DNA from: Piromyces finnis finn
Taxonomy: Eukaryota; Fungi; Neocallimastigomycota
Direction of reading: 5' to 3'
Length of the DNA stretch: 64,000 nucleotides
Assembly (NCBI GenBank): GCA_002104945.1
Contig: MCFH01000005.1
Location: 744,001 to 808,000 of the forward strand
The position numbers and the translations under genes are program-made. Shown piece after piece: positions 4,366-62,866 of this stretch; the first letter of the stretch is position 1, and each line of letters begins with the position of its first letter. Below the pieces are notes generated by a model, which saw only the letters and a list, made by a program, of their open reading frames with translations, had not been told where the DNA came from and searched no databases.

Positions 4366-4397
<32 letters not shown>

Positions 4398-4586
4398 GTT
4401 ATTATTAGCAGAAGAAATCATTTTATCATAATGGCCATTTCTATATTGTGAAAAGTCACTTGCTACATAACTATCAGTAGCTATTTCAACTAACAATTTT
4501 AGTATCTGATAAAAAAGGAGTACAGATATAAATATTATTACATTTATAATTAAAAATCTTTGTATTTTTCTCGGTAAAGCAATCAT
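2579..4586 (-). CDS. Uncharacterised type II membrane protein, possibly glycosyltransferase-like
   Basis: Four exons (about 4586-4191, 4045-3864, 3770-3126, 2916-2579) splice in frame. There is an N-terminal hydrophobic helix (FLIINVIIFISVLLFYQIL), a poly-Asn stem, then YISRHEGTISNF, EITNRYD, VVVNNPYE, LLYLPYQVSVMAMMENL and WVEWY..FIYFDGFEEL. The gene is well supported; the function is only inferred from topology. Confidence 0.55.
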
Positions 4587-38960: not shown

Positions 38961-40215
38961 TTAATTTTTCTTAGCAACCTTTACAACCTTAACAGTTTTC
39001 TTAGTAGTTTTCTTGGTTGTTTTCTTTGTAGTTGTGATCTTTTTTGTAGTTTTTTTGGTTGTTTTCTTTGTAGTTGTTGTCTTTTTAGTAGTTTTTTTAG
39101 TGGTGATAGGTTTCTTAGTTGTAGTAATTTTTTTTGTTGTAACAGGTTTCTTGGTTGTAGTGATTTTCTTGGTTGTAATAGGTTTCTTGGTTGTAGTGAT
39201 TTTCTTTGTTGTAACAGGTTTCTTAGTTGTAGTAGTTTTCTTTGTTGTAACAGGTTTCTTGGTTGTAGTAGTTTTCTTTGTTGTTTTCTTGGTAGTAGTA
39301 GTTTTGACATTTGATTTACATTGTGAAGAAATATTGAAAGTTGTACCTTCTTGAACTAAACTTTGACTTACCTTAACTATCATACTAATATTAAGACCAC
39401 TAGTATTTTGACATATTTTACTTTTAAGTTTATTGACATTTCCATATGTAATGCCGAAAACAGCTTTTCCTTGATTAAGGAAATTTTTATAATTTTTGCA
39501 TTCGTTGTAATTTACACAGCTTTCATTGATAGCAAAATCGAAATATTTACCAACTTCATTTATCATAAATAAAGAATTTTTTAAACCAATTGATAGTCCT
39601 AAACTGTGAGCAGTATTGGCTAACCAAATTGCATAATTGATTTCATCTTGTTTAGTTAATTTCAATTTTTTATTTTCAGGTTGACTATAACCATCTAAGT
39701 TATCAACTTCAATTGCATCACATCCTTTATTGGCAGCAATTTGCATTCTGTTTTGAATTAAAGGTTTAAGTTCTTTTTTACGAATGTCAAGCCATCTTTC
39801 AGATTCCCAACCGTCGTAAACACTTCCAACTAATCCTTTTACATTATAAAATTTCTTTTTATCATCACGATGATCTTCAATAGTTCCTCCAGAGAAATAA
39901 CAAATAACCTTTTTATTAGCTTTGTGAATATTGTTGATTAAGGATTGTTTAATATTAAAATCCATATCAAGTACGTTGGCCTTTTCTTTAGATCTATTAT
40001 TTTAAATAAAATATTTATATTTCATTAAATATGAATAAATATGCAAAAACGTTATTTTAATTAATATATTATATATCTACTTACAAGTTGAAACTGTTAG
40101 ATTCTAATACATAATTCCAACTATCACCTTGCTTTGGCTTCCATACGGTTTTAGCATCAATACCACTGAATACTAAAGATAAAGTAATTAATGCAGAAGA
40201 AAATGAAAATTTCAT
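38961..40215 (-). CDS. GH114 glycoside hydrolase copy a: signal peptide, catalytic domain, Lys/Thr-rich tail, no TM
   Basis: MKFSFSSALITLSLVFSGIDA-KTVWKP..WNY; one phase-2 intron; VICYFSGGTIE, ERWLDIR, GCDAIEVDNLDGY, FDFAINESC; TTTKK(P/T) repeats to the stop. Confidence 0.9.
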
Positions 40216-41511
40216 CTTTATATTTATATTAGGTAAAATATTTATTTCTTATTTCTTTATTATTTTATTTTTTTATATGAAATATACTATATGAATATAA
40301 ATTATTTATTAAAATAAAAATTTAATTTATAAGGAGGCCTTATTATACTTTAAAATTTTACTTTAATAAACAAATTTTATAATTTTATTAAAACCTTTAA
40401 TTTAAAAGTTCTAATAACAGTAAGATTATTAAAATTAAATGAATCTTATTAAAAATAAATATTATAATTATTTATATTTAACTCTTCAAAGTTAATATAA
40501 ATAATCTTGATAGTATAAAAAATATTTATTTTAAATATAAATATTATACATAAATATACAATATTTATATTTTTTAAAACTTTAAAAAAAAAAATAAATA
40601 AATGTAGACAATCCTTTTTTTTATAATAATATTTAAAAAAATCAATGTTACACAATGAAAGTTAAACTTTTAGCCAACCAATTAAAGTATTATTTTATAA
40701 TTTAAAACTCAAATTAATTAAAAAAAAAAAAGAATTGTAACAATAATACATATTAAAACTTAAATCAATAACAAACTTAATGTTTTAAAAAAAAATGAGT
40801 ATAATGAATGTAAAAATATTTTACTTTAAATTGGCATATTTTCTGTTTTTTTTTTTTTATTTTTATTTTTATTTTTATTTTTATTTTTATTTTCTATTTT
40901 CTATTTTTTATTTCATTTTATTAATAACTAACAATAATAAAACATAAAAATATAGAAACATAAATCAGAATAATTTACAAAAACAAAAATTGCATCGACT
41001 TAAAACCTTTTTTTAAAAATTTAATATATATAAATTACGTAATAATTTTTAATAATAATTATGAGTATGAATAAATTAAATTTTTTTATTTTTTGAAATG
41101 TAAAGTGGATAATTAAATATAATTAAACAAATGGCAAAAAATATACTTATCCATTAAGTTGCTTTGGTGTAATTGATACTTTATTTTTAATAAAACTTAT
41201 TTCAATTTAAAACAATTATATTATTGGAAAATAAAGCATAGTATTTAATATTATATCATAATGATTATAGATTTATATAATAAAAATAAACCACGTTATA
41301 AATATGGATAATGAAAATAGAGTGGACTTTTTTTCTTGTATATACTATTATATATAAGACTAAGTTAATTATTAATAAAATAATAAAATGCTAATCATTA
41401 ATTATAAATTTACACCATTAAGATAAAACTAAAGATGAAATTACTTTTGTTATTTTTAACCTATACTATTCCTATACTACATATTCTTTATACAAAAATA
41501 TATTTATCTAT

Positions 41512-41671
<160 letters not shown>

Positions 41672-42215
41672 AATAAAATAAAATAAAATAAATTAAAATT
41701 TATATAATAAAATACGATAAAGTTTTAAATTAAAATCCAATTACAATACTAAATTTTTTTGGTCACAAAATTTATAATAAAACAAAAAAAAAAATTCAAA
41801 ATATTTAGAATTTAGGATTTATATGTTATTTTCATAATTTATTAAGATACATATACTATTATTTTTCAATAATAATTTTTATATCTAATTTACTTAATAA
41901 ATTCTATTTTTATAATTAAATAAATAATTTATAAATATTATTTTATCCTATATATAAGAGAATAAAAGTATTTATATTTTTGTTAAAACTATATATAAAA
42001 TTGAGTTTGTTTATTGCATACTATATATACTATATAATATAATAAGTTTACTTTGTAAAAAATAAAATAATTTATATAATGATTTATAAATAAATAATTT
42101 AATTTTAATTTTTTTAAAAATATCTTTTATGGTGGGAAAAGAAAAAATTTAAATAAATTTTATATACAAGTGATTCTATAAATTGTAATATATTAAAATT
42201 CTATTTAAAACTCAT

Positions 42216-44663
42216 TTAATTTCTAGTAAATCTTCTGGAAAGTGAAGAAGCTTTTCTTGAGAAGCCTCTTTTAATATTTTGATACTTTCTTGGATTTTTT
42301 TTGAGGAACGCTAAAATTGCAGCAGCACCTAATACAGATCCTGTAATAGCAACACCAGTTACAATTGTTTTTGTATTTCCTTTATTATTTTCAGAGTCAA
42401 TTTGTTCCTTAATTATTCCACTTTCTTTATTGTTAATGTTAACAAGAGTAGAACCATTGTCATCATCTTCAGATAATTCACCATTATCATCGAGAATAGA
42501 TGGGTTAGAGTTTCCGTTATTATTATTATCATTATAATTAGTGGTATTAGTAGTAATATTAACATTGCTATTGCTATCACCATTAACGGCATTATTAGTA
42601 TTGTCAACATTAGTGTTATTTGTGTTGTCGATATTATTAGTGCTACCAGTACTACCAGTGTTATTTGTGTTGTCGATATTATTAGTGCTACCAGTACTAC
42701 CAGTGCTACTTGTGTTGTCAATATTATTAGTGCTGACAATACTACCAGTGCTACTTGTGTTGTCAATATTATTAGTGCTGACAATACTACCAGTGCTACT
42801 TGTGTTGTCAATATTATTAGTACTACCAGTACTATCATTATTATCAGGTTTTTTGCCTACATTACCATTAACAAAAGTTTCATTGTCTTCTCCAATAATT
42901 GAAGCTTGAGAATCATAATGAACATCAGCATCGCTGTAGTTTGATGAATTAGTTTTATTTGAATGACTGACTGGATTGCTATTAGAAGATCCATTTGAAA
43001 CAGGAATATCTCTATTTGAAGAAGTATTAGATTGATTATTACTATTATTATTTGAATTACTAGAAGAATTATTTGAAATAGGCAATTTAATTTGTGTTGG
43101 TTTAACATCTGAAATAGTTTTATTAGATGAAGTAAATGATATATTTTGCTTAGTTGTGGAAGATGGTTTATCTTGTATATTTTGCTTTGAAGTTGCAGAG
43201 GCTGTAATTTTTGTATTTCCAACTGTAAATTTAGATGTTATTTTGGTTTTGAAATCGGTCGTTAATCTAGTATTGACTCTAGTGGTGTATTTTGTAGTAC
43301 GTCTTGTAGCTTTAGTGGTTGATATTTTAATAATAGTGGTTGTAGGTTTAACAATAGTAGTAGTGGTAGTAGTAGTTGTTGTTGTAGTCTTTTTAGTAGT
43401 AGTGGTTGTTTTTTTTGGGATTGTAGTGTTTTGCTTAGATGAACTTACTTTTCCTATATTATTTTTAGTTAAAGCATTAATTTATTTTAATATAATCATT
43501 AGTTATAGAAAATATATAAATAAGGAAAAATAATAAAATTTTTTATAATAATTTATATATATAAAGTAATATCTATTTAACTTTATATTATATTTTATTG
43601 TATCAATAGTATAAATTTACCTGAATTAAAACTTGAACCACAATACTTTTTTCCATCAAAGTAAACAGATTCTTGAACTAAACTACTTCCTGGTTTAATA
43701 ATCATACTAATTGGAAGACCATCTAAATTTCTACATAAAGCTTTTAAGTTACTAGAAAGACCGTTATATGTAATACCTAATACTGGCTTTCCAGTAGAAA
43801 GGAAGTTCTTATACCAATAACACTCGTCACGACGAATACATCCTTCATTAACAGCAAACTCAAAATGCTCACCTACAATATCAATAATATCAAGACAATT
43901 TTTTAAACCTATTGAAATTCCCAATTCATGAGCAGTCATTCCTAACCAAGTAGTGAATTTAATGGCATCATTTTTAGTAAGTGGATTAGACCAACTTTTA
44001 ACATCACTAACTTGATATCCATCGACGTTATCGACATCAATTGCATCACAACCCTTACTAACGGCTTCTTTCATACGTGCTATAAGTAAAGGCTTAATTC
44101 CATCAACACGATAATCAAGCCATCTTTCTTTGGGCCAGGCTGAATATTTATTTCTTACTAATCCACTTACTGCAGTAAATTTATTATAATCTGGACGACC
44201 TTCTTCAATTGTACCACCTGAGAAATAACAAATGACCTTTTTACCATGATTATGATATTCTTTAATGGTTTCAGCACTTTTACCATAATCAACTTCAATT
44301 ATATCTGCACTTTCTTTATTACTATTTTAAAATTTAATTTAAAATTAATTATTTTATGAAATATTTTACAATAATCATTAAATTATTAAAATTATAGAAT
44401 AAAAAAAGATTAAATAATAATAATAAATAGATGTCGAGAAAAATGATAATAATATATAATAAAATAAACCGATGTTGATTATAGTTATATTAACAGAAAT
44501 ACCAGTAATAAATATTTATTAAATCATATTATTTTTCAAATACATACATATCGAAACCTCCAAAAGCAATATTCCATGTCATACTTTGAGTTGGTTTCCA
44601 TCTAGCTTCAGCATTATCTGATAATAATAATGAAGCTAAAATTGCTGGAAAAATAAACTTCAT
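42216..44663 (-). CDS. GH114 copy b: signal peptide, catalytic domain, Thr/Asn/Ser stalk, TM, basic tail
   Basis: MKFIFPAILASLLLSDNAEA-RWKP; VICYFSGGTIE, ERWLDYR, GCDAIDVDNVDGY, FAVNEGC; second intron 43454-43620; TM IVTGVAITGSVLGAAAILAFL then KKNPRKY. Confidence 0.9.
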
Positions 44664-44889
44664 TTTATATTTAATATTAATCAACTAATTATTTAATTAT
44701 GTATACTGTCTTTTTATTTTTTCTCTTCTTTATAATTTTCTTATAATACCTTCCTTTTCAATTTATTTCCTTTTACTTTTATAAATAATAAAATGATTTA
44801 TAAATTTAAATTTTGATTCTGTTAATCTTATTTTATATTATATTTTGAAATTTTCATATAAATATTAAATATGTAATACAAGTTAACCT

Positions 44890-44898
44890 GGCCAATAG
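44890..44898. promoter_or_regulatory. CCAAT box upstream of GH114 copy b
   Basis: GGCCAATAG about 230 bp upstream of the ATG. Confidence 0.3.
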
Positions 44899-46395
44899 TT
44901 TTAATTTATTGTTATTATAATATATGATGAATTTAAATATTAAAATTATATTATTTAATATTTAATATTGTTGAGATAATTTAATTTTCAAATATTTAAT
45001 ATATAATAAGGGTTTATTTAATAAGTTTAATATTCTTAATTATATTAAAAAATAGATTTAAGACATCTATAACTTAACAATAGATTTTTAGTTTTTAAAG
45101 CATATTTTTACATTTTTACTTAAAAATTTTTTAATTCTATTAATGCTTTTTTTCTTTTTATTTTATATAATTATAATGTCATGTGCTTTGTTATATTTAA
45201 GATTTTTCTTTAATTAAAAAAAAAAAAAAAACGGTAGAAAATAAAAATAAAATGATATACATTAAATATAATATATTTGAAAATGATATTTTTTTATATT
45301 AATTAAAGTTTCAAAGATGAATAAAAAATATATTAATTTCTATCAAAGTTGCCATATATGAATAAATATTAAACTTCAAAAATTAAAAAAATATTTTTTG
45401 AAACATTATTAAAGAATAATAATAATTAAAAAGAAGATATATTAATAGATATATATTAACAATCTACTTAAAAATGTATACAAAATTCTTGTATTGTTTT
45501 TTTTTTTTTTTCGAAAAAATATACAGAAAAATTATGTGATAAATATTGAATTTATTTTTTTTTTAAAAAAACAATTCTTATAGAATTAAAGTCTTTCCTT
45601 TTATCTTTGTTATATATCAAAAAAAAAAAAAAAAAAAGATTAATATCAGTATTTATTCATGAATAAAAACAAATTTCATTTATACGCAATATTTATACTG
45701 TTAATAGAATTATTACCATAAATATTAAACATTATTTAATTTGAATATTTTATTTCTTAATAACTTTTAGGAAAAAATATTAACACATATAATATAAATA
45801 TAAATAGTAATTATTTAATAAGTATAAAGATTTTGTTTCATATGTTTAATACTGATGCTTATTAATTTTGATAAATTTCTTTACAAGTTTTTTTTAGTAT
45901 ATGAATGATATCATTTCTACATCTAGAAGATTTTTGATTAATTTCTTTTAATAATTTCATATTTTCAGATGAATAAAAATACAATTCATTTTTTTTTTTT
46001 TTTAAATTCTAACGTTTTTAAAATACTTTTATTATTTTTTTATTGGATATATATATTATTTTTTTTTTTTGATATTAAAAACTCAAATGAATTTTATTAT
46101 ACTAATTGCTAAAACATTAATATCAATTATATAATTACAGTTTATATAATTTAAAATTTAAATTTAAATGAAGGTTAATAATACAAATAAAATAAAATAT
46201 ATATTAAAATTTTTGAAAAGAAGAAATAAATTATTATTATTATTATTATTATTATAAAAAAAATCCTTCAAAATATATTATTTTTCTATTTGCATATTAT
46301 TATATAAATTGTAATCAAACTAAAAGTTCTTTTTTCTATTATACTATCAAAATTATATAAATGATATAATAATATCATTATGTATATTCTATTTA

Positions 46396-47775
46396 TTAAT
46401 TGTTTTCGTTTCTTTTTGTAGTAAGTCTACGTTTAACTGAAGTGGCGCTTCTTGAAATATTTCTCTTAATATTTTCGTATTGTTTTGGGTTCTTTTTAAG
46501 AAAAGCAAATATAGCAACAGCGCCAACAACTGATCCCGAAACAGCTAATCCAGCAACAATAGTGGTATTATTGTTACCTTCATCTTCATTTTTAGTTTTA
46601 AATTGATCATTAATTTCTTTATCATTTGGAGCAATTTGTTTTACAGATGAATCGTTGCCATTAATATTATTGCTGTTAGTATTACTATTATCTGCAATAG
46701 TATTATTACCACTAATAATAGATGGATTTAATCCGGCATCATTAGAAGGTATTAAGGAAGTTGCAGTTGCATTAGCAGTAGTTGGCATTATTGGTTCTTC
46801 TGGAGTAATTGCCGAGGCAACATGACCACAAGATTTAATATCATATGAATTTGTATGTTGATATAACATTTTATCCTTAAAAACATTAGTAAATGGCATA
46901 TCCTTTTGGAATTCGCAAACCTTTGGAGCATAACTTAAACTATAATTAATAGCAAATACTGGCTTTCCGGTTTTAATGAAATTTTTATAGTATTGACATT
47001 CACTTTTTCTTGCACAATCTTCAGAAATACCAAAATCAAAATACTTACCAACATTATCTACAATATCAAAACAATTCTTTAATCCAACTGCAATTCCCAT
47101 ACTATGAGCGGTATTACCAACCCAAGTAGCAAATGTAATAGCTTCTTCCTTTGTAAGTGGGTTAGACCATTCATTCTTAACTGGACGAGCTTGATATAAA
47201 TCAAGATTATCTACATCAATAGCATCACATCCCATATTAATAGCTTTTTGCATACGGGCCTTTATTATTGGTTTTAAAGAATCCTTACGTACATCAACAA
47301 AACGTTCACCATCCCATTCTGGATATTTATTTTTAACTAAACCTTCATGCTTAAAATATTCTTTGTAATCATCACGAAAATCTTCTGCTGTTCCACCAGA
47401 GAAGTAACAAATAACTTTCTTTCCTAATTTGTGGAATTCTTTAAGATGATCTTCATGAATAATATCAATTTCAACAATATCAGCTTTTTCGCTATGGCTA
47501 TTAAATTAAATTTTCAGAATATTTTATTATATATAAATGAAATATTAATAATATTCTTTTCTTTTCTTTTTTTTTAAAAAAAAAGTCTTTTAATTAAATA
47601 AGCAATTATTTAGTAATTTAAGCTATTTAATTTTTTTAAATAATTCTTTTTATTCTTACAAATCTGGATGTCCTTCATATAACATGATATTATAAGTTTG
47701 ACTTTGATTTGGCTTCCAATAAGCTTTAGCGCTTCCTAGCAATAAAGAAGCAGCAGCAAAAGTTAAATATCTCAT
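46396..47775 (-). CDS. GH114 copy c (divergent): signal peptide, catalytic domain, short stalk, TM, basic tail
   Basis: MRYLTFAAASLLLGSAKA-YWKP; VICYFSGGTAE, ERFVDVR, GCDAIDVDNLDLY, FDFGISEDC; TM IVAGLAVSGSVVGAVAIFAFL then KKNPKQY. Confidence 0.88.
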
Positions 47776-47976
47776 CTTAAATTTATATTTTATTTTTTGT
47801 TTTTAATTATTTTTCTTTATTTTATTTAATTATAGCTTTAATATTTTTTATTTATATATTTTTTATTTATTAATTTATTTTAATTTTTTTATTTAAATTT
47901 ATAATGTAGGTTCAAACAAAGTATATTTATACAAAAATTTTTATTTTATTATAAAACCAATGTATCACAAAAAATC

Positions 47977-47985
47977 AGCCAATTA
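47977..47985. promoter_or_regulatory. CCAAT box upstream of GH114 copy c
   Basis: AGCCAATTA about 200 bp upstream of the ATG, with a second CCAAT at 47957-47961. Confidence 0.3.
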
Positions 47986-49415
47986 TTTAAAGATATTATA
48001 AAAATTTTATATGAATTGTTGCGATAAAATATACATAAATTATCATGATAATTATTCTATTCTAATTAGATATAGAAATAGAAAGGATTAAATATTTCAA
48101 TTATAATCTATTAATTTACAATAATAATTAAAGTTTAATGATGAATTTAGAATCATTTTATTATTTATCTTTAAATAATACTTTTTTTAATGTAAAGCTC
48201 AATTATATATTATAATGTAATCCAATGTTAGAAAAAAAAACTTTTATTTACCAACCTTTTTTGAAAAAAACTTCACCAATTCTAAATTATGATAATATTT
48301 TATGCATATTAAAGTTAAAAAACTTTAATTAATAATAAAATACATTTTATTGTTTTTTTTTAAAAAAAAAATTTTATATGATGAATTATCATTTATATTA
48401 AATGGTATTTTAATTTTATTAGTAATAATTATGTTAATAATAACAATATATATAATATATTATTATATATTATATATAATATTTTAGTAAAAAAAAAAAG
48501 GGGGATGATCAATATATTATTAATTAAATGATATACAATATTGATAAATATGTATCAATTAATATCGTAATGTAATAATAATATAAATTGCTTATAATTT
48601 TCATTTATCACTTTTTTTGTTAATGACTTATAAAAGAGTCATCTATAATACCATTTTTAAAACTTTTTATTATTTAAATTTCCATAATCCATTGATAGTA
48701 TTGAAAAAAAAAAAACTTTCAATACTATCTTTTATCAAACATTTCTTTTTATTCAAAAATAAATAAATAAAAAAAAGCAATATTTTATATATTTTATTTT
48801 ATTTACTATTTATTTTATTAGTAATTTTTATTAATTATTAATATACACAATTTAATTTGTATAAGTGATACCAAAAAATTATTATTATATATTGTTGCTA
48901 TTTTTTTTTTTTTTACATTAAATATAGCAATTAAATTATATTATATTTTATATTAAATATATGATTATAACATATTTTAGTTCTAAAATATTTTTTTAAA
49001 AACTAATTTTTTCTTTTATTTTTATATTAACATTAATAATAAAATTATTATGGAGTTTTTTTTTTACAACTATACAGTCATACTTTAATTACAGTAATAA
49101 TAATAATTTTTTAACTATTATTATTATTATAAATCTTAGCATTTGACTATATAATATTATTTAATTATATTATTTAATTTAAATAATAATATAGATGAAA
49201 TGAATATTTATAATATTAAATACCTATCTCCTTAGGACTTCTATTACTCTATTATACTATATTAAAAAAAATATAAAATTAATCAAATAAAAAATTCGAT
49301 TTTAAGTAAATTAATCAAAATATTTATCCTTTTTATGTTATACTTTAATAATACATTAAAGAATAGAACTAAAAAGATTAGATATTGTTAGTTGCAATTA
49401 CAGACATCAACAAAA

Positions 49416-51049
49416 TTAGTTTCTGCCTTTTGTTGTAACTCTTCTAGAGATAGTAGAAGCACCACGCTTAATTGAAGTAGCACTTCTAGAAAGACCTCTT
49501 TTAATGCCTTCAAACTTTTTTGGGTTCTTCTTAAGGAAAGCGAAGACGGCAGCAGCACCAAGAACAGAACCAGTAATAGCAACACCAGTAGTAACAGTTG
49601 ATGAATTATCATCATCAGGGTTAGCTTTATCGAGAGTTGGTGATACAATACTAGTATTATTTCCTTCTTTAATAACTGGTTTGGATTCAGCTGGATTACT
49701 TGGATTAACAGCTGGTTTAGATCCAGTTGGATTGCCTGGAGTTACAACTGGATTGGATCCAGTTGGATTAATTGGATTAGCAGTTGGTTTGGATTCAACT
49801 GGGTTAATTGGAACAACTACTGGTTTAGATCCAGTTGGGTTACTTGAAGTAACGACTGGCTTTGAAACTACTGGAGTATTTGCTGGTTTAACTTCAAATG
49901 GTTTTGGAATTCCAGTTGGAGTAACCTTTGTTGATCTATTAATAGTAGTGATCTTCTTAGCAGCAACTGGTGCAACAGTAGTAGTCTTCTTGATTGTTGT
50001 GGTCTTTTTGACAGTAGTGGTCTTCTTTGGTTCATCATTTCTAGATGGAGAACCTACTTTACCTGATTGGAAACTTGAACCACAATGCTTTTTACCATCA
50101 AAAATAATTGATTTTTGAACTAATTCTTCACCGTCCTTAATAATCATACTAATTGGAAGACCATTTAAGTTTTTACATAAAGCATCTCTATTAGAGGAAA
50201 GACCATGATAAGTAATACCTAAAACTGGCTTACCAGTAGAAAGGAAATTCTTATACCAGTGGCATTCATTACGACGAGCACAACCTTCGTTAACTGCAAA
50301 ATCATAATATTTACCAACTGTATCAACAATATCAAGACAATTTTTTAAACCGATTGCTATTCCCATATCATGAGCGGTTTGACCTAACCAAGAAGTGAAT
50401 TTAATAGCATCTTGCTTTGTAAGAGGATCAGACCAATTATTTTTAACATCTCCAACTTGATAACCATCAACATTATCAACATCAATACCATCACAATGCT
50501 TAGAAACAGCTTCAGAAATACGTTGTTTAATAAGAGACTTGTATCCACTAACACGATAATCAAGCCATCTTTCTCTTGGCCAAGCAGAATATTTATTTCT
50601 AACTAAACCATCAACCTTTGTATATTGATTAAAATAGCTACGATAATCTTCAACTGTACCACCAGAGAAATAACAAATAACCTTTTTTCCACGTTTATGA
50701 AAATCTTGGATTTTTGAAGAAGAAGTATTTTCTAAATCAACTTCTAAAACATCAGCTGATTCTCTTGAACTTTATGTAAAATGTTATAAATAATATGTTA
50801 AATTTAAATTTAAAAATCAAAATTATGTGTAATATATTTATATTAATTACAAGTAAATTATTTAAAATTTCTAATTAAATTTATTTAATATTTATCCTCA
50901 ATTATACATTACACTTTTTTTTTTACTTACATATCAAAACCAGAACCTAGGGCAATGTTCCAAGTTTCATGTTGATTTGGAACCCATCTAGCTTCAACAT
51001 GACTAGTAATTAATAAAGCAAGAGTTGCAACAGATAATAAATATTTCAT
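49416..51049 (-). CDS. GH114 copy d: signal peptide, catalytic domain, Thr/Lys then Pro-rich stalk, TM, basic tail
   Basis: MKYLLSVATLALLITSHVEA-RWVP; VICYFSGGTVE, ERWLDYR, CDGIDVDNVDGY, FAVNEGC; NPTGSKPVV repeats; TM VTTGVAITGSVLGAAAVFAFL then KKNPKKF. Confidence 0.9.
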
Positions 51050-51357
51050 TTTATTTTTTATTTATTTTATTCTATATTATTTTAATTTTTTATCTATTTA
51101 AATTTTTATTTTAGTTTTTATATTATATTATTTATATTTATTTTAATTTATTTATTTTTATTTTTTTTTTTTTTTTTTTCAATTTTTTTTTTATTTTTTG
51201 GTATTTCAACCCAAAAATGAACTAATTATTGCATTTATATGAAAAAAAAATATGCCAATTTCATCTTTTTAAAAATTCTACATTTAATAAGAACCTTCCA
51301 TATTCCAACTAAAAAAATAAAAACCTTATTTTTTAAAAAATTTTAAATTGTAATTGT

Positions 51358-51366
51358 GGCCAATGA
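51358..51366. promoter_or_regulatory. CCAAT box upstream of GH114 copy d
   Basis: GGCCAATGA about 310 bp upstream of the ATG. Confidence 0.3.
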
Positions 51367-52723
51367 TTTTCAAGTATATTAAATTTAACATATTGATTTA
51401 TTGTAATACAAAAATATATAAATTTAATATACCTAAATCATATAATCAAAGTATAATTGTATAATTATAATTAGGTTTAATGTTAACAACCATTTTTTAA
51501 AAAAAAAAAGAAAAGAGAAAAAAAAAATTAAAAATGAAATTTAATTTTAAATTAAAAGAAAAACTAAATTTTCTAATAAAAACTTATTTGTAAACTCTTA
51601 TATTTTATTATCACCACAATTTAAACACTTTTAGGTTTTATGTGTATGAATGAATAAATGGAACTTTTCTAATATTCATTTAAAAATGTATAACCATTAT
51701 AAAATAAGAGCTATACTTCATATTAATTATTTTATAATTATTAAAGTTTATAAACTAAAATTAATTAAACTAGATTTTTTAATATTCTTATTAATAAAAT
51801 ATTTTTTAAATTAATACTAACCAATAATATTATTTTATAAATGATAATATTAAAAAAAAATATTATTTGAGTATATTATAATATATATTATAAGAGTAAA
51901 AAAATAAATAATAAAAAATTGCTTCAAATTTGTACTTAAAGATGAAAATAGGGCTATAGTAAATAAATAAATAAAATAAATAAATAATACCCCTTTATAT
52001 AGTATAAAGGGAAAGAGTAATAATATTATAATATTTAATAATTTCTTTATATCAACAATTGGTAATATAAAATCTACTTAATTCTTATATTAATTATAAA
52101 TATTAAAAAAAAAGTCTTTATCAATATTAATGTTTCTACTTGAATTATATATTTCATTTTAATTTAAATATTTAAAACCAATATGTACATATAAGTATAA
52201 TAATATATAAATAGTTCTTTATATAATATTTATTAATTATATAGTTATATATATTATTTTAGTCATTTTTTAAGATTTCAAACAATTAAATTAAAACAAA
52301 TTTTTTAAATCTAGAACATAAAACGAATAATTTGTGTTTTGTGGACATTCAAATTGAATAATCATGAATTTAATTCACTTTAAAAGACCATAAAAATTGT
52401 TTATTTAGACTAGATAATATAACTGTATTTTTATTATTATTTTTTTTTTATTATTATTTATTATTTATTATTATGTTTACTTGGTTCAAAAAGTTTTAAA
52501 ACTTATTTCATATAAATTATAAAAATTATTTTACATATATTAAAAAATTCTTTTAGATTTAAATACATATAAGATTTACAGTTATATAAAGAGAAAAATT
52601 AATTATAGAGTATATATTATGTATGTGTAATGTGGCAATGTATTAAAACTATATGTGGAAAATTAATATTAAAAAAATTATATTACTTTTATAAATATAA
52701 ATTAAACTTTAATAAAAAAAAAT

Positions 52724-54576
52724 CTAGTAATTTAATGTTTTTGAAAAGGTATATCTATAGGTACTAAATGGATTATCAACAAGATCATAATCTACATCTA
52801 CATTTGTATTTGAATTACTAGCAACAGCCTTGGTTTTCTTCTTTTTAGTGGTGAGTTTTCGAGTAACAGTACTTGCACTACGTTTAACTGAAGAAGCACT
52901 CCTTGAAATATTATTTTTAACAGTACACGCGCCCTTGGATATATTTTGCTTAAGTTGTTCATACTGTCTTGGGTTTTTCTTTTTGAAAACAATAAGTGCT
53001 GCTGCACCAACAACGGATCCAGTGACTGCAACACCAGTAGCAAGACCTTTATGTCCTTTATTTTCATTATTTTCAAGATTGCTAGAAAGTTCTTTACTAT
53101 TTTGATTTTTATCTTTATTTTTATTGCCATCTTCTATTGGAACATCAACGGCGGTAATATTTCCATTAATAATTGGTATTTCTAAACCTCCAGTAGCATT
53201 ACTTGTTGGATTATTTTTATTATTTCCCTTTGATTGAGAAGTCTGTTTATCATTTATCGTTGTTCCTTTATTAGATGATGGATTTGAAGATCCTGATGAT
53301 GAGCTTGATGATCCTGATGATCCTGATGATGATCCTGATGAATTTGACGAACCTGAAGAATTTGATGAACTTGAAGAACTTGACGAACCTGAAGAATTCG
53401 ATGAACTTGAAGAACTTGATGACCCTGAAGAATTCGACGAACTTGAAGAACTTGATGACCCTGATGAGGATGATGATTCTGAAGAAGGAAGACTAACACG
53501 ACCTATTTATATGGAAAATTAATAAATATATATTATATATTGCAATAAAAAATATAAGATATTTTAAATTTCATTTTATTTCATTAGTTTTAGATAGGAT
53601 AAATATTTATTTAAAGTTATATAATATAAATGATTAATATTAACTGCTTACCTGAATTAAAACTTGAACCGCAATGCTTTTTACCATCAAATACTACAGA
53701 ACTCTGTTCTAATTTAGTACTTTCCTTAATAATCATAGAAATAGGAAGACCATTTAAATTTCTACATAAAGCTTCTCTATTAGCAGATAAACCATTGTAA
53801 GTAATACCTAAGACAGGTTTACCAGTACTTAAAAAGTTTTTATAATAATGGCATTCATCACGACGTGCACAGCCTTCATTTACTGCAAAATCATAATATG
53901 ATCCAACAGTATCAACAATATCAAGACAATTTTTTAAACCAATAGATAGACCGTATGAATGAGCTGTTTCACCTAACCATTTTGTAAATGTAATTGCATC
54001 TTCTTTTGTGAGAGGTTTAGACCAACTTTTAACATCTCTAATTTGATAGCCATCAACATTATCAACATCAATTGCATCACATTTTTTTGTAACAGCTAAT
54101 TGCATACGAGCTTTAATTAATGGCTTTATACCATCTACACGGTAATCAAGCCATCTTTCATCTGGCCAATCTGAATATACATTTCTTACTAAACCACTAA
54201 CAGCAGTATATTTATCATAATCATCACGATATTCTTCTATTGTACCACCAGAGAAATAACATATAACTTTTTTACCTACACTGTGATAGGTATCTATTAA
54301 TGATGAACTTTTTTCTAAATCAATCTCAAGAATTTCTGCATTTTCTTTAGAACTATATTTTTTGTTAATATTAATTTAGATAAATATTAATTATCTTTAA
54401 AAATTAATAATATATATATTTATATTGTTGTTTAATTTATGATTAATAACATACATATCAACAGCAGAACCTAATGCAATGTTCCAAGACATATATTGAG
54501 TTGGTTTCCATCTTGCTTTAACATTTATTATGTATAATAATGATACAAAAATTGGAATCGATAATTTAAAAATCAT
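52724..54576 (-). CDS. GH114 copy e: signal peptide, catalytic domain, poly-Ser stalk, TM, long cytoplasmic tail
   Basis: MIFKLSIPIFVSLLYIINVKA-RWKP; VICYFSGGTIE, ERWLDYR, CDAIDVDNVDGY, FAVNEGC; second intron 53503-53651; TM LATGVAVTGSVVGAAALIVF; tail ends DNPFSTYRYTFSKTLNY* at 52724. The last exon is not reported in the correct frame by the ORF track. Confidence 0.88.
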
Positions 54577-55156
54577 GAATGAAATATAATTTATTATTGA
54601 GTATATTTTTGTTCCTTTTTTTTTTTTTTTTTTTTTTTTTTGCTGATATATAAAATGCCTTTTATAATTAAATATATAAAAAATTGCTTTATTGAATAAT
54701 TTATATTTTATATAGCTCTTTATGATTTATATAGTTTTTATTTTTGATATGCCTTAAAAAATACATAAATCAATAAGAAACGAAGATGATGTCTATTAAA
54801 CTCAAATATTTGTTATATATTATTAATTATCATTTAATTTAAAGTATAATGTATAATAATTATAATTGCATTATTTTGAAATTGGTTAATTTACAATAAA
54901 TTTATATTTATTTATTTATTTATTTTCAATTTTTATTTAAATTATAAGGTTTATTTTGCAAAATCATTTATAAACTAATTTACACAAAATATACAAAGTT
55001 AAAATAAAAATAAAATACAAAGAATAAAAAATAAAAAAATAAAAAAATAAAAATAAAAATAAAAAAAAAAAAAAAAGCTACTTTTAATATAAAATAAGGC
55101 GTTTTTAATTTATATAAATATTAAAACTATAAAGTGGTGTAACATATATTAATATT

Positions 55157-55165
55157 AGCCAATGA
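55157..55165. promoter_or_regulatory. CCAAT box upstream of GH114 copy e
   Basis: AGCCAATGA about 580 bp upstream of the ATG. Confidence 0.25.
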
Positions 55166-56407
55166 ATTTTTATTTAACTTTAATATAAATTTCCATTAAT
55201 TATAACATAAGGTTATAAAAATAAAAATAACTTTTTTTTTATTATTGATATATAATAATTAATTAATCTTATTTAAATTAAAAAAACGGCACATAATTAA
55301 AGACAGTATATAAATAATATTTTCTATAATGAAAAACTTAATTAATACTATTATTAAAATAGAATTGGAATAATTTAAATTTTATATTTATACAATGGAA
55401 AATATAATAAAAATAATATATTTTTTTATTTATATTTTAATCATTTTTAATATATAAATAATTGTATTTATAAATATTAATATTAAATAATACTAAAATT
55501 TTTCTATTTAATATTCACAGTAGTGTAAAAAAAAAATTAATTTATTTATGAATATATGTATATAATTATTATTGAATTTTCAAAATATTTTTATTAAAAA
55601 ATAATTCTTATACCTCTCCTTAATAAAGTAACGCCATTTAATAAACTTTTTTTTTTTTTTTTACTTTATGTAAAAAAATTTTATTTAATAATTTCATATT
55701 GCGTTTTTAAATTCTAACATTCTAAATTTATATAAAGATTTCTAAAGAAATTATATAAATAACATGTATAAAAAAAATATAAATATTCTAACTATTTTAT
55801 AAATAATAATAAAAAAAAAAAAAAGTAAACTATATATTTATAATATAAATAAATTATACTAATTGTTAATATATATTTTTAAATTTTGTAAACTATATAA
55901 ATGTTATATAAATGTTATATTATATTATTAATATATTTATGAAATGATTTATATAAATTATATTTATAAATAATTATGATTATACTAAATATTATAATTC
56001 ATTTTTTGATTTACGTTTAAGATTTAGATTAATGCGATTTGCATTTACGATTGTTATTTGTAATTTGATATTTAAACTATGTTAAATTTTTAAATTACTT
56101 TAATATTGTTTTGTATTTTGTTTTTTTGCTTTTTGCTTTTTTTTATCAATATTTTAATTTGATATTTTTATATATTTTTTATTTCAAAACTCTTTTAAAT
56201 TAATATTATTATTTCCTTTTTAAACGCTTTAATATTTTTAAAAATAATAATATTTTTTACTTTTATTATTTATTAAAAACTATAATAATTAAATAAGAGT
56301 TTTGCTTTATAAGTAATTATTAATTAATTAAATGCGTTTCTTTTTTTCAATATTTTGAAAGTATTTTAATTAGTTATCAGTTATAATGTTGCATAATTTT
56401 GAGTAAT

Positions 56408-58756
56408 CTAGACTCTGGAACGCTTAAAAGAGCTAGCTCTCATTGAAATACCTTTTTTGAATTGTTGATATCTCTTTGGATTTTTCATGAAAAGAGCAAA
56501 AACAGCAGCAGCACCTAAAACACTACCTGTAATAGCAAAACCAGTAGCTACAGCACCAGTGTTACTATCTCTGTTTTTGTTATCTTGTTCAGATGATCTA
56601 TCAATAGTACTAGCTTCACTATTAGAACTAGTAATATTGCTTTCTAATTCATCATCACTACTTACATCACCATCATCAGATGAACTATTATCAGTGATAT
56701 TGTTACTATAACTAGAGGTATTTCCATCAGTGGTAGTACTATTACCTTTAACAACAGAAGGAATGATAACATTATCATTATTAGCATTAGTGTTACCATT
56801 ATTTGTGTTGACATTATTGTTGGTGTTGGTATTGTCACTATTGGTGTTTGTATTACCATTGCTAGTGTTGGTGTTACTATTATTACTGTTATCACTTGTA
56901 TCCTTAATGATATCAGAAAGGAAAGAATTGACTCTATTGGTATCATCTTCATTATTACTTGAAAAAGATGCAGGTTCATTAATATTAATATCATCGTTAT
57001 TCATTAAAATAACAGGTGGTCGAGAAGTAGCATTAGCATTATTTGAGGTAGAAGTTGCAGTTTGAGAAGTAGCATTAGCATTATTTGAGGTAGGAGTTGC
57101 AGTTTGAGAAGTAGTATTAGCATTATTTGAGGTAGGAGTTGTAGTTTGAGAAGTTGCATTAGCGTTATTAGAGATAGAAGTTGTAGTTTGAGAAGTTGCA
57201 TTAGCGTTATTAGAGATAGAAGTTGCAGTTTGAGAAGTAGCATTAACGTTATTAGAGGTTGAGGCTACAGATTGAGAAGTGGTAACTGAAACTTGAGTAA
57301 TAGAGGAAGCTGGAGCTTGAGAAGCAGTAACTTGAGTAGTAACAGTTTGAGAAATAGCCTGAGAGGTTGCACCATTAGAAGTAGTAGTAACTTGATTAGT
57401 TGGAACAGCTCTATCAGTTGTACTAACATTGTTAATAGTTTTAGTTATTGGTTTTTCAACTACTACATTTGTAATTTGGATAGTGGTAGTAGTAGTTGGT
57501 TTAACAATAGTAGTAGTAGTAGTGGTAGTAGTGGTTGGTTTAGCAATAGTGGTAGTAGTGGTTGATTTAATAATAGTGGTAGTAGTGGTTGATTTAATAA
57601 TAGTGGTAGTAGTGGTTGGTTTAGCAATAGTAGTAGTAGTGGTTGGTTTAGTAATAGTAGTAGTAGTGGTTGATTTAACAATAGTTGGTGATGTTGAACC
57701 ATTAACAATACCACTATTGAAATTAGAACCACATTCTTTCTTTCCATCAAAGAAAATAACATCTTGAATTAAACTACTTCCTGGTTTAATAATCATAGTA
57801 ATTGGAAGACCATTTAAGTTTCTACATAAAGCTTCTCTATTTCCAGAAAGACCATTATAAGTAATACCGAAAACTGGTTTACCAGTAGCAAGGAAATTTT
57901 TATACCAGTAGCATTCATTACGTCTGATACAACCTTCATTAACACCAAAATCAAAATTTTTACCAACAATATCAATAATATCAAGACAATTTTTAATACC
58001 AATTGAAATACCCATTGAATGAGCAGTTTGTCCTAACCAAGTAACATAAGTAATTGCATCATCTTTAGTAAGAGGACTAGACCAAACGTTTTTGACATCC
58101 TTAACTTGATAACCATCAACGTTATCAACTTCAACAGCATCACATTTCTTATCAATAGCCTTCTTAATACGAGCCTTCATTAAAGGCTTGATTCCTGAAA
58201 CGCGATAATCAAGCCATCTTTCATTTGGCCAAGCTTCATAAATGTTTCTTACTAAGTTTGGAACTTCAGAAAATTGGTCATAATCATCACGACCTTTTTC
58301 AATAGTACCAGCAGAAAAATAACAAATAACTTTCTTTCCAGCATTATGATATTCTTTAATAGATTCTTCAGACTTATCAAGGTCTATTTCAATTATATCA
58401 GCCTTTTCTTTAGAGCTATAAAGTATCGATTATATATATTAATAAATTATTTTTTATATTCTAATTCATTACTATTATATTGAATATTTTATATAAAAAA
58501 ACAAAACTTTAAAATTTCAAAGGTAAATTGAAAATCCAAACTAATTTTAAAAAATAGTTTGATATCATTAAAAGTTATGCTCTTTCTTTTTTTTTTTTTT
58601 TATTTAAATATACATAATATATTTAAAATATGCTTACATATCAATAGGACTTCCAAAAATAATGTTATATTTTTGAGATTGTGTAGGCTGCCATCTAGCT
58701 TCAACATTACTTATTAATAATGAAACTAAAAAAGTAATTAGTAATATTAATTTCAT
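56408..58756 (-). CDS. GH114 copy f: signal peptide, catalytic domain, long Thr/Ser/Asn stalk, TM, basic tail
   Basis: MKLILLITFLVSLLISNVEA-RWQP; VICYFSAGTIE, ERWLDYR, CDAVEVDNVDGY, FGVNEGC; TTTTTI(A/I)K(P/S) and SQTATSTSNNANAT repeats; TM VATGFAITGSVLGAAAVFALFM then KNPKRY. Confidence 0.9.
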
Positions 58757-60807
58757 TTTGATTTCTCTATTCAATGTTATTTATTTTTATTATTATTTAT
58801 TTATATATTTATTGATTTGCTTATATCTTTCTTTTCTATATTTCTTTAAAATATTTTACAATTTTAAAGAAAAATAATTCTAATAATTACTTAAATTAAA
58901 ATAGTAATAAAATTATATTTTTATTTATAATAAAAAATGAATAAATTGTGTTATATTTATAGTTCAGTAAGCACACAATTAATATTTTATATATTTTATA
59001 TATAAATAAATTACATTTTATATTGACCAATAATATATTGTTTTCTTTTTATTATACAGAAAAAAAAAAAAAAAAAAAGATAAAGTACAGAGATTAAATT
59101 ATATAAAGAATATTCATTATTATAAATTTGTATATATTAAATATATTTAAATGTATTAGTCTTGATGAATAAGAAACTTAAATTTTGTATTTCAAAATTT
59201 AAGGTTTCTTTTAAATAAAATGACTAAGGCGTTTAGAAGCTATATAAATTTCTAATAGCCTAGTATAATAACACTACTAAAATATCTTTATCTTTTTTAT
59301 TTAATTACATTATCTAGTAAAAAAAAAAAAAAATAACAATAATTTTAATATAATACCTTTAATAATAATTCCAGAATTCCAAATTATTTTTTTTAATTTT
59401 ATTTTTTTTTTTCGGTCAAACTTATGGAAAAACTCCAAAATTTTTTTTCTTCTATATATTAATTAATTAAAAAATTTTTTTATTAAAATCAAAAATGTTT
59501 GATACATTTTATATCAAATCAATATGAATTAAAGTTTATAAATTAATATACTATAAAAGGAAAGAAACTTGATACCTATTTACACCCTTTTTAGTAAATT
59601 AATTTACTATTATAGTATTGTACTAATTGTTCTATGACTATTAAAAGTTTAAAATCTAATAATTAAAGTTACAATACAAAAAAGCATAACCAATAAATTT
59701 ACAGAAAAAATTAATATTATCTATACAAAATATATTAAATATATAATAATTTATAATGTAATTTATTCATTTATATATTCCATCTATTTACTTTTTTACC
59801 AAAACAAAAGAATTATGAAAAAAAGTGAATTGTAATATATGGCTATTCTTGTACAAACTAATAATAGGGTGGCTTAATATAATTGTTAATATATGTCAAT
59901 TTAATTTAAACTTCAACATAAAAAAAAAAACATTTTACCACTTTAAAAGATAAAAATATATTAATGTAATGTATATTTTAGATTGAATACATTATAATTT
60001 TAAATAAAAATGATTTCTTTTTTTTTGTTTAATTTTATCATAAAAATAAAGAATAATTATATAATTATTAATAAAAATATATTATTATTAGGTATAAAAA
60101 CCACTATAAGATATTCGAAATGGAATGAAATAATAATTAAAAATTATAAAATTATAAAAAGAATAAAGCTTAAGACTTAAATAGTGTAATTGATTTTTAA
60201 TCACTTGTATTCATATAATAATAAAATTCTATAACTTTTTTTAATATGCTAATATTCATTTATATTTTAATTTATAAAATAAGCACATTTTTATTTATGT
60301 TTTAAAAAAAAGTAAAAATTTATAAAATTTTAACATAGCATTGTTATTTATTATTAGTTTTTATTTGTATATTCTTTTATTTAATTATACTAAAATGGTT
60401 TTTAGTAGAAATATTTATATCAATTATATAATAATAAAATTAAGTTCAATTACTTTTATTATTAATAATGTTCTTATTTCACGTTCATTTACTTTTCTTT
60501 TTTTATTTATTTTTAATATTTTTTTATTTCAACTTTTTAAAGCTTATGATTAATAATTTTCAATTCTAAATATTTCTTTTTTTTTTTTGTAATTTTTAAT
60601 TTTTTTTTTTTTTGTAATAAAATATATACTATCATAACTATTTTAAATTTTACAATTAAATTAAAATTAATGTATCTTTTAAGTATACTTTTAATATTAA
60701 CATAATTAAATTTTTTAAAAAAAATTATTTTTAATTTATATCATATATATTTTAAACAATTTAATCTTTTCTATTTATATCTTTATATATTGCATATTAT
60801 TATTAGT

Positions 60808-62866
60808 CTATAAATCAAAATTTTGTGTAAATTGATATCTATAAGTACTGTATTGATTATCATTAATGTTTATAGCAGCAGGATCATTAGTTACTGGAAG
60901 ATTTGGAGTTGTTTTAGATTTCTTTGAAGTAAGTCTTCTTTTGACAGTACTAGCACCACGCTTTACAGAAGTAGCTCTTCTTGAAATACTTCTCTTAAGT
61001 TGGTTATACTTCTTTGGATTTTTCTTTACAAAAACAAAAGCAGCTGCCGCGCCAACAATTGATCCTGTAACGGCAACACCGGTTACAACAGAACCAGAAC
61101 CACCTTCTTTTTCATCATCAAATTGACTATTAATAATATTTTCAGTTTCTTCAATTTTATTATTTATTGTAGATGGTACTTCTTTATTATTTGTGTTATC
61201 CTTAACAACAGGAATATCATTATTAGCAGGCTTTGAAGTTGGATTTGATACAATATTATTAGTTGAATTTGTTGTTGCATCATTTGAAATTGCATTTGAT
61301 ACTGCATTTGAAGAAGCGTTAGAAGTAGCATTTGAAATTTTATTTGAAACTGCATTTGAAGAAGCATTGGAAACGACTTTAGATGCTACTTTAGAGGATT
61401 CTTTGGAAGAAGCATTTGAAGCTGCTGCACTTGAAATAACTGAGTTGGAAGATGCTGCTTTTGAAGTGGTTGAATTTGATGTAGCATTGTTTTTAGCAAC
61501 TGAACTGTTTGAGACAGTTGGCTTTTGAACAACAGGAGTAGGATTTTGAACAAGAGTAGTTGTCTTCTTAACAGTAGTTTGCACAATTGTGGTCTTTTTT
61601 ACTGAGTTGCTAGAGTTGCTAGAGCTTATGCCTAACGTATTAAATAAAATTCATTAATTAAAATTATGAAAAAAAAAAAAAAAGAATTAATTTATGATAT
61701 ATTTGGTTATACACTCTATTTATAATAACAAGAAAACAAAAAAAAATAAAAAATATTTAATTTATATACATACCTGAACTAAAATTAGAACCACATTGTG
61801 ACTTTCCATCAAAAGTCCAACCAGCTTGTTTTAAATTTTGGGAAGATTTTACAATCATACTAATTCCTATACCATTCAAAGCATTACATAAAGTTGGAAG
61901 CTTATCGTTTAAATTACCGTAAGTAATACCAAAAACAGCCTTGCCATTATTAATGAATTTTTTATAGTATGAACATTCTTTACTATGATTAACACAACTT
62001 TCATTAATTGCAAAATCATAATAGCTTTCAAGAGTATCAATTAAGCCAGGAATATTCTTTAAACCAATAGAAATTCCTAATTCATGAGCTGTATTTCCTA
62101 ACCATTTAGCAAATTGAACTGCATCTGATTCTTTAAGATCCCAATGATTTTTATTTACACTATAACCATCTAAATTATCAACTTCAATACCATCACAGTT
62201 TTTACTTACAGCAACTTTCATACGATTCTTAATTAAAGGCTTAATACCTTCAACTCGATAATCAAGCCAATATTCACCTGGCCAATCATCATATTCATTT
62301 TTAACTAATCCTGATATAGCTTTAAAATCTTTAAAATCATCACGCCATTTTTCAATTGTACCTACAGAGAAATAACATATAACCTTTTTACCAGCATTAT
62401 GAAATTCTTTAATTTTTGAATTGCTTAATTCATAATCAACATCAATAACTTGGGCCTTTTCGGAATTACTTTATTAAGTTGGAATAATATTACAGTAAAA
62501 TTATTTTTAAATAATATTAATGTATTATAAAATATAAAAAAAAATAAAAATAACATATTAATAAATGACTATATAATTTATTATTATAAATAATATTTCT
62601 TGATATTAATATTATTAATTTTTTTTAAAAAAAAAAATATTATATAAATTATAAACTAAAATTTTGTTTTTTTTTATCTTTCACTAAATATTTAATTTAT
62701 AATTTAAAATATTCTAATTTAAAATAATTATTATATTTAATACAAACACATTAAATTTATCATCTCCTATAACATAATTCCAAGTTAAACCTGGAGTTGG
62801 TTTCCATCTTGCTTCAACATTAGATAACAATAAGGAGGTAATTACTGTTGATAATAAGAATTTCAT
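60808..62866 (-). CDS. GH114 copy g: signal peptide, catalytic domain, Ser/Asn/Ala stalk, TM, long cytoplasmic tail
   Basis: MKFLLSTVITSLLLSNVEA-RWKP..WNY; VICYFSVGTIE, EYWLDYR, CDGIEVDNLDGY, FAINESC; second intron 61632-61773; TM VVTGVAVTGSIVGAAAAFVFV; tail ends DNQYSTYRYQFTQNFDL*. Confidence 0.9.

Follow-up and report, generated by a model that had tools for sequence, protein, structure and literature searches.

What enzymes of glycoside hydrolase (GH) family GH114 do for anaerobic fungi, in which they are highly abundant yet do not act on the plant cell wall, is the question raised by a tandem array of seven such genes in the anaerobic gut fungus Piromyces finnis. In published reports, Orpinomyces C1A is credited with 16 GH114 transcripts significantly upregulated on all four lignocellulosic substrates in pure culture (Couger 2015, PMC4672494), GH114 is placed among the five most abundant GH families of four anaerobic-fungal genera and is not counted as a plant-wall family (Gruninger 2018, PMC6054980), and it is listed among the families expanded in the phylum (Orlowska/Muszewska 2022, PMC8778642). 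Its role was left open in 2018, when a galactosaminogalactan (GAG)-like role or a new activity was proposed (PMC6054980). The window analyzed here is a 64-kb stretch with a G+C content of about 18%, positions 744001-808000 of contig MCFH01000005.1 in the public, annotated P. finnis assembly GCA_002104945.1. A tblastn search of the window with one catalytic domain gave seven matches, all on the minus strand at 39321-62440; the first 38 kb gave no match. The genes, hereafter g1 to g7, occupy 38961-62866 of the window with neighboring starts 3112-4448 nucleotides apart, in agreement with an earlier sequence-only reading of this DNA that had described seven co-oriented paralogues spaced about 3-4.4 kb. 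Because only 1.1 kb is visible beyond g7, the array could extend past the window.

The seven proteins are members of GH114, with all defining features of the family present at the level of sequence and fold, and their enzymatic function is predicted. The spliced models were searched exon by exon, and full-length analyses used the public protein P0001, which matches g4. The family assignment made in the sequence-only reading held when checked against the Pfam profile PF03537 (Glyco_hydro_114), which matched all seven genes (E 5e-16 to 6e-64, the latter for g1; 59-216 bits on exon pieces, against a cut-off of 27 bits). Full-length g4 scored 199 bits across profile positions 1-227 of 231 and matched no other Pfam family. 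The closest solved relative by sequence was Ega3 of Aspergillus fumigatus (6OJ1, E 2e-39), followed by the F. solani GH114 enzyme (9EP6, E 9e-22). An AlphaFold2 model of g4 residues 20-275 (pLDDT 97.2) likewise found Ega3 as its best PDB match in Foldseek (TM-score 0.85/0.87, root-mean-square deviation 2.2 Å), with 9EP6, GH191 enzymes and PelA (GH166) next. These latter proteins, at ranks 2-15, share with g4 the modified (beta/alpha)8 fold and the catalytic pair, but they score much more weakly (TM-score 0.69-0.78, 12-23% identity) and are soluble or periplasmic enzymes.

The Asp of the motif VDN.D.Y and the Glu of [NS]E.C were invariant in an alignment (A1) of the seven domains with one ascomycete and two bacterial relatives; their retention in all seven genes had been claimed from the letters of the DNA, with the first motif written as D[VP]DN.D.Y. 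Through the alignment to 6OJ1 the two residues correspond to Ega3 D189 and E247, the verified nucleophile and the verified acid/base of that enzyme (PMC12054363). An invariant Trp (W62 in A1) corresponds by the same route to Ega3 W154, which forms the tip of a mobile loop closing over the Ega3 site (PMC12054363). Six Cys columns are also invariant, pointing to three probable disulfides (judged from the columns), and a conserved fungal disulfide pattern has been described (PMC12054363). Many acidic columns are invariant as well, as would be expected of a groove that binds a cationic polymer. The most divergent copy is g3, with an SEDC acid/base motif and DLY in place of DGY. No assayed gut-fungal GH114 enzyme was found in the literature searched.

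Signal peptides and transmembrane (TM) helices were assigned from hydropathy together with homology and motifs. Exon 1 of each of the seven genes encodes a hydrophobic, signal-peptide-like N-terminus ending ..VEA/RWKP. In g2 to g7 one C-terminal, hydrophobic, Gly/Ala-rich helix (Kyte-Doolittle 19-mer mean 1.9-2.25, e.g. TGVAITGSVLGAAA..) is followed by a basic, R..S/T-rich tail that starts KKNP[KR].[YF]..[ILF] (variants KKNP, KKKNP and MKNP). Because a signal peptide is combined with a C-terminal helix and a basic tail, these six are predicted to span the membrane once in type I topology, exposing the enzyme on the extracellular side. Both the signal peptide on every protein and the count of six type I membrane proteins had been anticipated in the sequence-only reading. 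The remaining protein, g1, is not of this type: it lacks a hydrophobic C-terminal segment, no TM exon was found down to position 37600, and its last 112 or so amino acids form a Thr/Lys-rich repeat tail closing with ..VKVVKVAKKN. A tail of this type (38961-39300 in g1), a Thr/Lys repeat ending ..V.VVK.V.K.V.KKN, recurs in the relatives P0011, P0013, P0016, P0022, P0023, P0028, P0035 and P0036, and is carried by a dockerin-bearing relative also. Such a basic tail might mediate binding to the wall or to a polyanion.

Between enzyme and membrane, g2 to g7 have Ser/Thr/Asn/Pro-rich, mucin-like stalks that are probably O-glycosylated. Every stalk has an in-frame minisatellite of its own; the periods are 45, 36, 36/18/9, 42 and 27/54/81, and 48/24 nucleotides, with both the 42-nucleotide and the 27/54/81-nucleotide repeats in the g6 stalk. 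The stalks therefore evolve by repeat expansion, separately in each paralogue. Coding minisatellites, all with periods that are multiples of three, were located at 39001-39284, 42612-42834, 49669-49864, 53276-53486, 57022-57280, 57480-57710 and 61281-61374. The Pfam scan of every exon and stalk of the seven genes found no dockerin (CBM10, PF02013) and no carbohydrate-binding module (CBM), as had been claimed, and the same scan detected CBM10 in the relative P0022 and in a Neocallimastix neighbor; the seven array proteins are non-cellulosomal. The overall layout recalls the fungal wall sensors of the Wsc/Mid2 type, which have a signal peptide, a long O-glycosylated stalk, a single TM helix and a short basic tail, and carry no enzyme domain. 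Because no Pfam family matched the stalk or the tail, the resemblance is one of layout and not of homology.

Motifs of the form Y..phi and NPF are endocytic sorting signals. Y..[ILF] occurs in the tails of the array proteins and NPF-like motifs occur in g5 and g7, a combination that suggests endocytic recycling toward growth zones. The tails of g5 and g7 are longer and close with ..NPF/NQY-STYRY.F. At these extreme C-termini (52724-52790 in g5, 60808-60870 in g7) the conserved motif reads ..N[PQ][FY]S/N.YRY.F[TS].., and it is also found in P0003, P0026, P0027 and P0038, from several species; it may be a sorting or EH-domain-binding signal. A word search with the TM helix and tail of g4 returned two proteins, both GH114, with a query too short for an E-value against 5.8 billion sequences.

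All seven coding-sequence models are intact, with GT-AG introns, lengths that are multiples of three and zero internal stops. A phase-2 GT-AG intron interrupts the same codon in all seven, directly after the signal-peptide exon (..VEA/RWKPTQ..WN). A second intron, in phase 1 after ..SSFNSG, is present in g2 (43454-43620), g5 (53503-53651) and g7 (61632-61773), while g3, g4 and g6 are continuous at this position; g4 and g6 are close relatives of intron-bearing genes, and the absence is precise. With the 5' intron retained in every copy, this distribution is consistent with repeated losses of the 3' one. Five models equal the public annotation in length, at 387 (g1), 405 (g3), 490 (g4), 708 (g6) and 545 (g7) amino acids. 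The public g2 model (P0004) has 280 amino acids and is missing about 400 that comprise the stalk, TM helix and tail, because it reads into intron 2 and then stops. The public g5 model, of 505 amino acids, begins at an internal Met and has no signal peptide. These two public models look wrong, as annotation errors, and corrected versions are new here.

Transcription was examined in RNA-derived contigs. The runs used, three from three studies, are each labelled with one organism. Both g5 introns (54454-54353 and 53651-53503, GT..AG, minus strand) are exactly spliced out in contigs from runs X1, X2 and X4, one from each study, and these contigs extend to 54603, upstream of the modelled ATG. Intron 2 of g2 shares its phase-1 position with the g5 intron that the RNA confirms. 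Positions 49300-50349 of g4 are covered by contigs from three runs with zero mismatches, and two near-identical g4 pieces occur in one community metatranscriptome. Because the contigs were already assembled, this evidence speaks for presence and splicing and not for expression level. Residues 1-235 of g4 exon 2 are 100% identical to the P. finnis protein BCR36DRAFT_344570 (P0001), also of 490 amino acids, from a 1.37-Mb contig.

The array is old and conserved. Catalytic domains of the seven paralogues are 44-75% identical, and the paralogues are under purifying selection, with ratios of nonsynonymous to synonymous substitution (dN/dS) of 0.23-0.63 and synonymous sites close to saturation. At the DNA level the copies resemble one another only in exon 1 with about 100 nucleotides upstream of it, in the catalytic exon and in the segment for TM helix and tail; since the last of these is included, the anchor was inherited through duplication. 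In a tree of 77 proteins the gut-fungal GH114s form one clade (SH-aLRT 99), placed on long branches apart from a mixed group of bacteria and one ascomycete. Five of the genes (g2, g3, g4, g5 and g6) share one subclade, and g1 and g7 belong to other, deeper gut-fungal subclades. Both g2 and g6 have a sister of their own in Piromyces sp. E2 (P0009 for g6). In that species three GH114 genes lie within 21 kb in a common orientation, and the same TM helix and tail recur after each of them; in Anaeromyces robustus an 11-kb stretch holds three copies, likewise co-oriented, and in Neocallimastix there are two copies, of which one bears a dockerin, and one degenerate fragment. In the 40 proteins sampled from the gut-fungal clade, the TM helix with KKNP anchor was the commonest architecture (17 of 40), three had another TM helix, at least five a basic tail like that of g1, and two a dockerin. 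Because clusters and anchors recur across genera, array and architecture are lineage-wide and not a recent local burst. The sequence-only reading had offered both as novel: the type I anchored architecture stands as new, and the array itself proves to be old, present in other genera and equipped with the anchor most frequent among the sampled gut-fungal matches. As to the less regular copies, the Neocallimastix fragment (locus L005, 19976-20364) is short and degenerate, with its GH114 match running across frames, and at 16193-16890 of the Anaeromyces locus L007 the match changes frame near 16456, where a frameshift or a small intron is possible.

Ega3 is the natural point of comparison, being a membrane-anchored enzyme that acts on a self-made polymer (PMC9860509). 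The array proteins share with it (6OJ1/6OJB) the Pfam and CAZy family, nucleophile, acid/base, loop Trp and Cys pattern, at about 33% identity, and g2 to g7 are, by prediction, like Ega3 in being single-pass membrane proteins with an extracellular catalytic domain. In Ega3, however, the anchor is N-terminal (type II topology), the linker measures about 20 amino acids, and the protein is encoded by a single gene within a five-gene GAG cluster (PMC9860509), whereas the predicted type I proteins g2 to g7 have a signal peptide and a stalk of 80-390 amino acids, are anchored near the C-terminus and end in a cytosolic tail that is conserved; they belong to an array of seven genes that has no cluster partners at its locus. 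A GAG-cluster arrangement of the uge3-sph3-gtb3-agd3-ega3 type, with GH114 adjacent, was not found there.

The reading favored here, to which we give about an even chance, is that this old, conserved and expressed family of Ega3-like GH114 enzymes trims the fungus's own galactosamine-type matrix, with recycling and display. Each protein would enter the secretory pathway by a cleavable signal peptide, and its (beta/alpha)8 domain keeps the retaining machinery of Ega3, namely the Asp, the Glu, the loop-tip Trp, three probable disulfides and many invariant acidic residues. In g2 to g7 the catalytic domain would stand outside the cell on its stalk, which the Gly/Ala-rich helix and the basic cytosolic tail would hold in the membrane, and the unequal stalk lengths (about 80, 154, 160, 180, 364 and 390 amino acids) would put the same chemistry at differing depths of wall or matrix. 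The Y..[ILF] motifs of the tails, and the NPF-like motifs of g5 and g7, would direct endocytic recycling to growth zones; g1 would either be released or stay attached to the wall by its basic tail. The fungus itself would most probably make the substrate, a cationic polymer containing alpha-1,4-linked galactosamine. Acting alongside the expanded CE18 deacetylases of the phylum, the enzymes would trim, loosen or release this polymer while rhizoids grow and when the fungus attaches to plant particles or detaches from them.

The balance favors such a self-made cationic polymer because CE18 and CBM87 are reported for the genome, because transcripts of the genes occur in runs labelled with a single organism, and because g2 to g7 would be tethered to the producer's own membrane. 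A MycoCosm table gives P. finnis 16 CE18 (Agd3-family) deacetylases and 19 CBM87 modules (PMC12586995), and Agd3 homologues are present in anaerobic herbivore symbionts (PMC7229062). The sequence-only reading had claimed that the array has no biosynthetic partners, which is true within the window and beside the array and does not extend to the genome as a whole, given the published table. It had also named a complete endogenous GAG pathway co-expressed with the array as the finding that would favor ordinary processing of self-made matrix. Such a pathway is found in part (the CE18 and CBM87 figures, the Agd3 homologues, single-organism transcription, and the C1A upregulation), and self-matrix processing is therefore better supported than a battery aimed at foreign polymer. 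Several observations weigh on the other side. No galactosamine polymer or exopolysaccharide of anaerobic fungi was found in the literature searched. The 64-kb window, which includes 1.1 kb beyond g7, was scanned for open reading frames (ORFs) of at least 75 amino acids, and none encodes a glycosyltransferase, deacetylase, epimerase or GH135 protein; nor did GAG partner genes turn up next to a further two GH114 genes of P. finnis, at loci L003 and L004. The CE18 genes of P. finnis are taken from published table figures, and the specificity of GH114 is known from very few enzymes. Expression without bacteria is compatible with a constitutive defensive or foraging role, and dockerins on some relatives (P0022, L005) point outward, to the plant particle and its biofilm. 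The endocytic part of the reading draws on short motifs, and in g4 F replaces Y.

An opposite view takes the array for a battery displayed at the surface and directed at foreign cationic exopolysaccharide, such as that of the bacterial Pel type or the GAG of another fungus, by which the fungus would clear or feed on biofilm on plant particles or make contact with partner microbes. This was broadly the proposal of the sequence-only reading, of which the surface display and the non-cellulosomal nature stand, while the foreign target is disfavored by the CE18 table and by single-organism expression; we consider it improbable. The conserved Ega3-like active site would suit it, since Ega3 and its relatives disrupt Pel and GAG biofilms in vitro (PMC12054363, PMC8778642), as would the lack of a biosynthetic partner at the locus, the two g4 pieces in a community metatranscriptome, and the dockerins of some gut-fungal GH114s, which would place those proteins on plant-bound cellulosomes. 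A foreign target leaves aside, however, the many CE18 deacetylases reported in the genome, which would be partners of a self-made polymer, and the genes are expressed in runs of a single organism. A plasma-membrane tether reaches no further than the length of its stalk, a poor design against a neighbor's matrix, and conserved, sorting-like cytosolic tails would suit enzymes of wall growth.

It is likewise unlikely, in our estimate, that specificity or reaction has changed in the gut-fungal clade, so that the enzymes would act on another cationic or amino-sugar polymer, or build wall as transglycosylases, and a galactosamine (GalN)-polymer label would be wrong. The gut-fungal proteins do form a long-branched clade of their own, with 33-41% identity to characterized or named enzymes and with clade-specific insertions such as VKN.WS.PLTK; transglycosylation is known in GH114 (PMC12054363), FsGH114 may accept an acetylated substrate, and an unknown catalytic function was raised as a possibility by Gruninger et al. 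(PMC6054980). The catalytic pair, the loop Trp, the Cys residues and many acidic residues are nevertheless invariant with Ega3 and with bacterial proteins named as polygalactosaminidases, and the co-expansion of CE18 and CBM87 fits a polymer of N-acetylgalactosamine and GalN. That the genes are decaying duplicates, or an artefact of annotation or assembly with no current function, is scarcely credible and was rejected: two public models look broken (g2 at 280 amino acids, g5 with no signal peptide) and degenerate GH114 fragments exist in Neocallimastix, but the seven frames are intact with canonical splice sites, spliced RNA agrees exactly with the g5 model, the paralogues are under purifying selection, and orthologues are present in Piromyces sp. 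E2.

A bolder form of the favored self-matrix reading, which we hold only tentatively and regard as doubtful, is that gut fungi, an early-diverging lineage, make a GAG- or Pel-like cationic galactosamine adhesin, and that a depth-graded set of membrane-tethered GH114 enzymes, returned by endocytosis to growing rhizoids, would act with the expanded CE18 deacetylases to govern how the fungus adheres to plant particles and lets go of them. An open puzzle of Ega3 is that the enzyme is GalN-specific and sits at the membrane on a linker of 20 amino acids, yet deacetylation takes place out in the wall (PMC9860509). If the bolder form is true, the long, unequal stalks would answer how a membrane-bound enzyme reaches a substrate deacetylated in the wall. 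A self-made substrate would mean that gut fungi own an undescribed cationic matrix relevant to fiber attachment, and a foreign one that they carry an anti-biofilm arsenal; GH114 enzymes are in addition of applied interest for biofilm dispersal.

The gene family and the phylum are those of the published GH114 expansion (PMC4672494, PMC6054980, PMC8778642), reported already in 2015 and 2018. The new elements are the type I anchored architecture and the two corrected gene models; in the portions of the three papers available, domains are counted, and tandem arrays, the type I anchor with its stalk, the basic tail and catalytic-residue conservation do not appear. Because the expansion was known and the genome is public and annotated, the advance that this locus offers is incremental. 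It supplies seven intact, expressed candidates, catalytically complete as judged by conserved residues, with corrected models and a clear architecture (Table 1).

Table 1. Genes, catalytic codons and transmembrane helices of the GH114 array, in window coordinates (aa, amino acids; nt, nucleotides).
Feature	Position	Strand	Details
g1 GH114, 387 aa	38961..40215	-	exons 40215-40085, 39993-38961; intron 1 40084-39994
g2 GH114, 684 aa	42216..44663	-	exons 44663-44548, 44321-43621, 43453-42216
g3 GH114, 405 aa	46396..47775	-	exons 47775-47660, 47497-46396
g4 GH114, 490 aa	49416..51049	-	exons 51049-50931, 50769-49416
g5 GH114, 533 aa	52724..54576	-	exons 54576-54455, 54352-53652, 53502-52724
g6 GH114, 708 aa	56408..58756	-	exons 58756-58638, 58415-56408
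g7 GH114, 545 aa	60808..62866	-	exons 62866-62748, 62468-61774, 61631-60808
g1 catalytic codons	Asp 39704-39702, Glu 39524-39522	-	alignment to Ega3
g2 catalytic codons	Asp 44032-44030, Glu 43846-43844	-	alignment to Ega3
g3 catalytic codons	Asp 47211-47209, Glu 47022-47020	-	alignment to Ega3
g4 catalytic codons	Asp 50477-50475, Glu 50288-50286	-	alignment to Ega3
g5 catalytic codons	Asp 54063-54061, Glu 53877-53875	-	alignment to Ega3
g6 catalytic codons	Asp 58126-58124, Glu 57937-57935	-	alignment to Ega3
g7 catalytic codons	Asp 62179-62177, Glu 62002-62000	-	alignment to Ega3
g2 predicted TM helix	42359-42303	-	stalk ~364 aa; tail KKNPRKYQNI...
g3 predicted TM helix	46554-46498	-	stalk ~80 aa
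g4 predicted TM helix	49589-49533	-	stalk ~160 aa
g5 predicted TM helix	53038-52985	-	stalk ~154 aa; 87-aa tail, end ..NPFSTYRYTFSKTLNY
g6 predicted TM helix	56545-56489	-	longest stalk, ~390 aa; 42-nt and 27/54/81-nt in-frame repeats
g7 predicted TM helix	61083-61027	-	stalk ~180 aa; 72-aa tail, end ..NQYSTYRYQFTQNFDL

Partner genes of the GAG type were also absent from the examined GH114 loci of Piromyces sp. E2, Anaeromyces and Neocallimastix. A very large gene beside the GH114 copy at locus L003 was considered as a synthase and rejected, having no glycosyltransferase or PelG-like Pfam match. By ORF scan and Pfam, the array is flanked by genes for a Rad54/SNF2 protein, a short-chain dehydrogenase, a DUF202 protein and a SET-domain protein, and by an Asn-rich ORF. 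The dehydrogenase is of the classical type and does not have the profile of an extended short-chain dehydrogenase/reductase epimerase. An Rfam scan of the window gave no match. Read depth at 51834-52376, in the spacer between g4 and g5, could have been taken for a small transcript and was treated as cross-mapping, because the segment is AT-rich and of low complexity and weak matches were spread across the whole window. The spacer between g1 and g2 contains an (AATA)n microsatellite of about 44 copies (41515-41714). An extremely Asn-rich ORF of 726 amino acids lies on the plus strand at 33853-36033; it matches no Pfam family, and no identical called product is on record.

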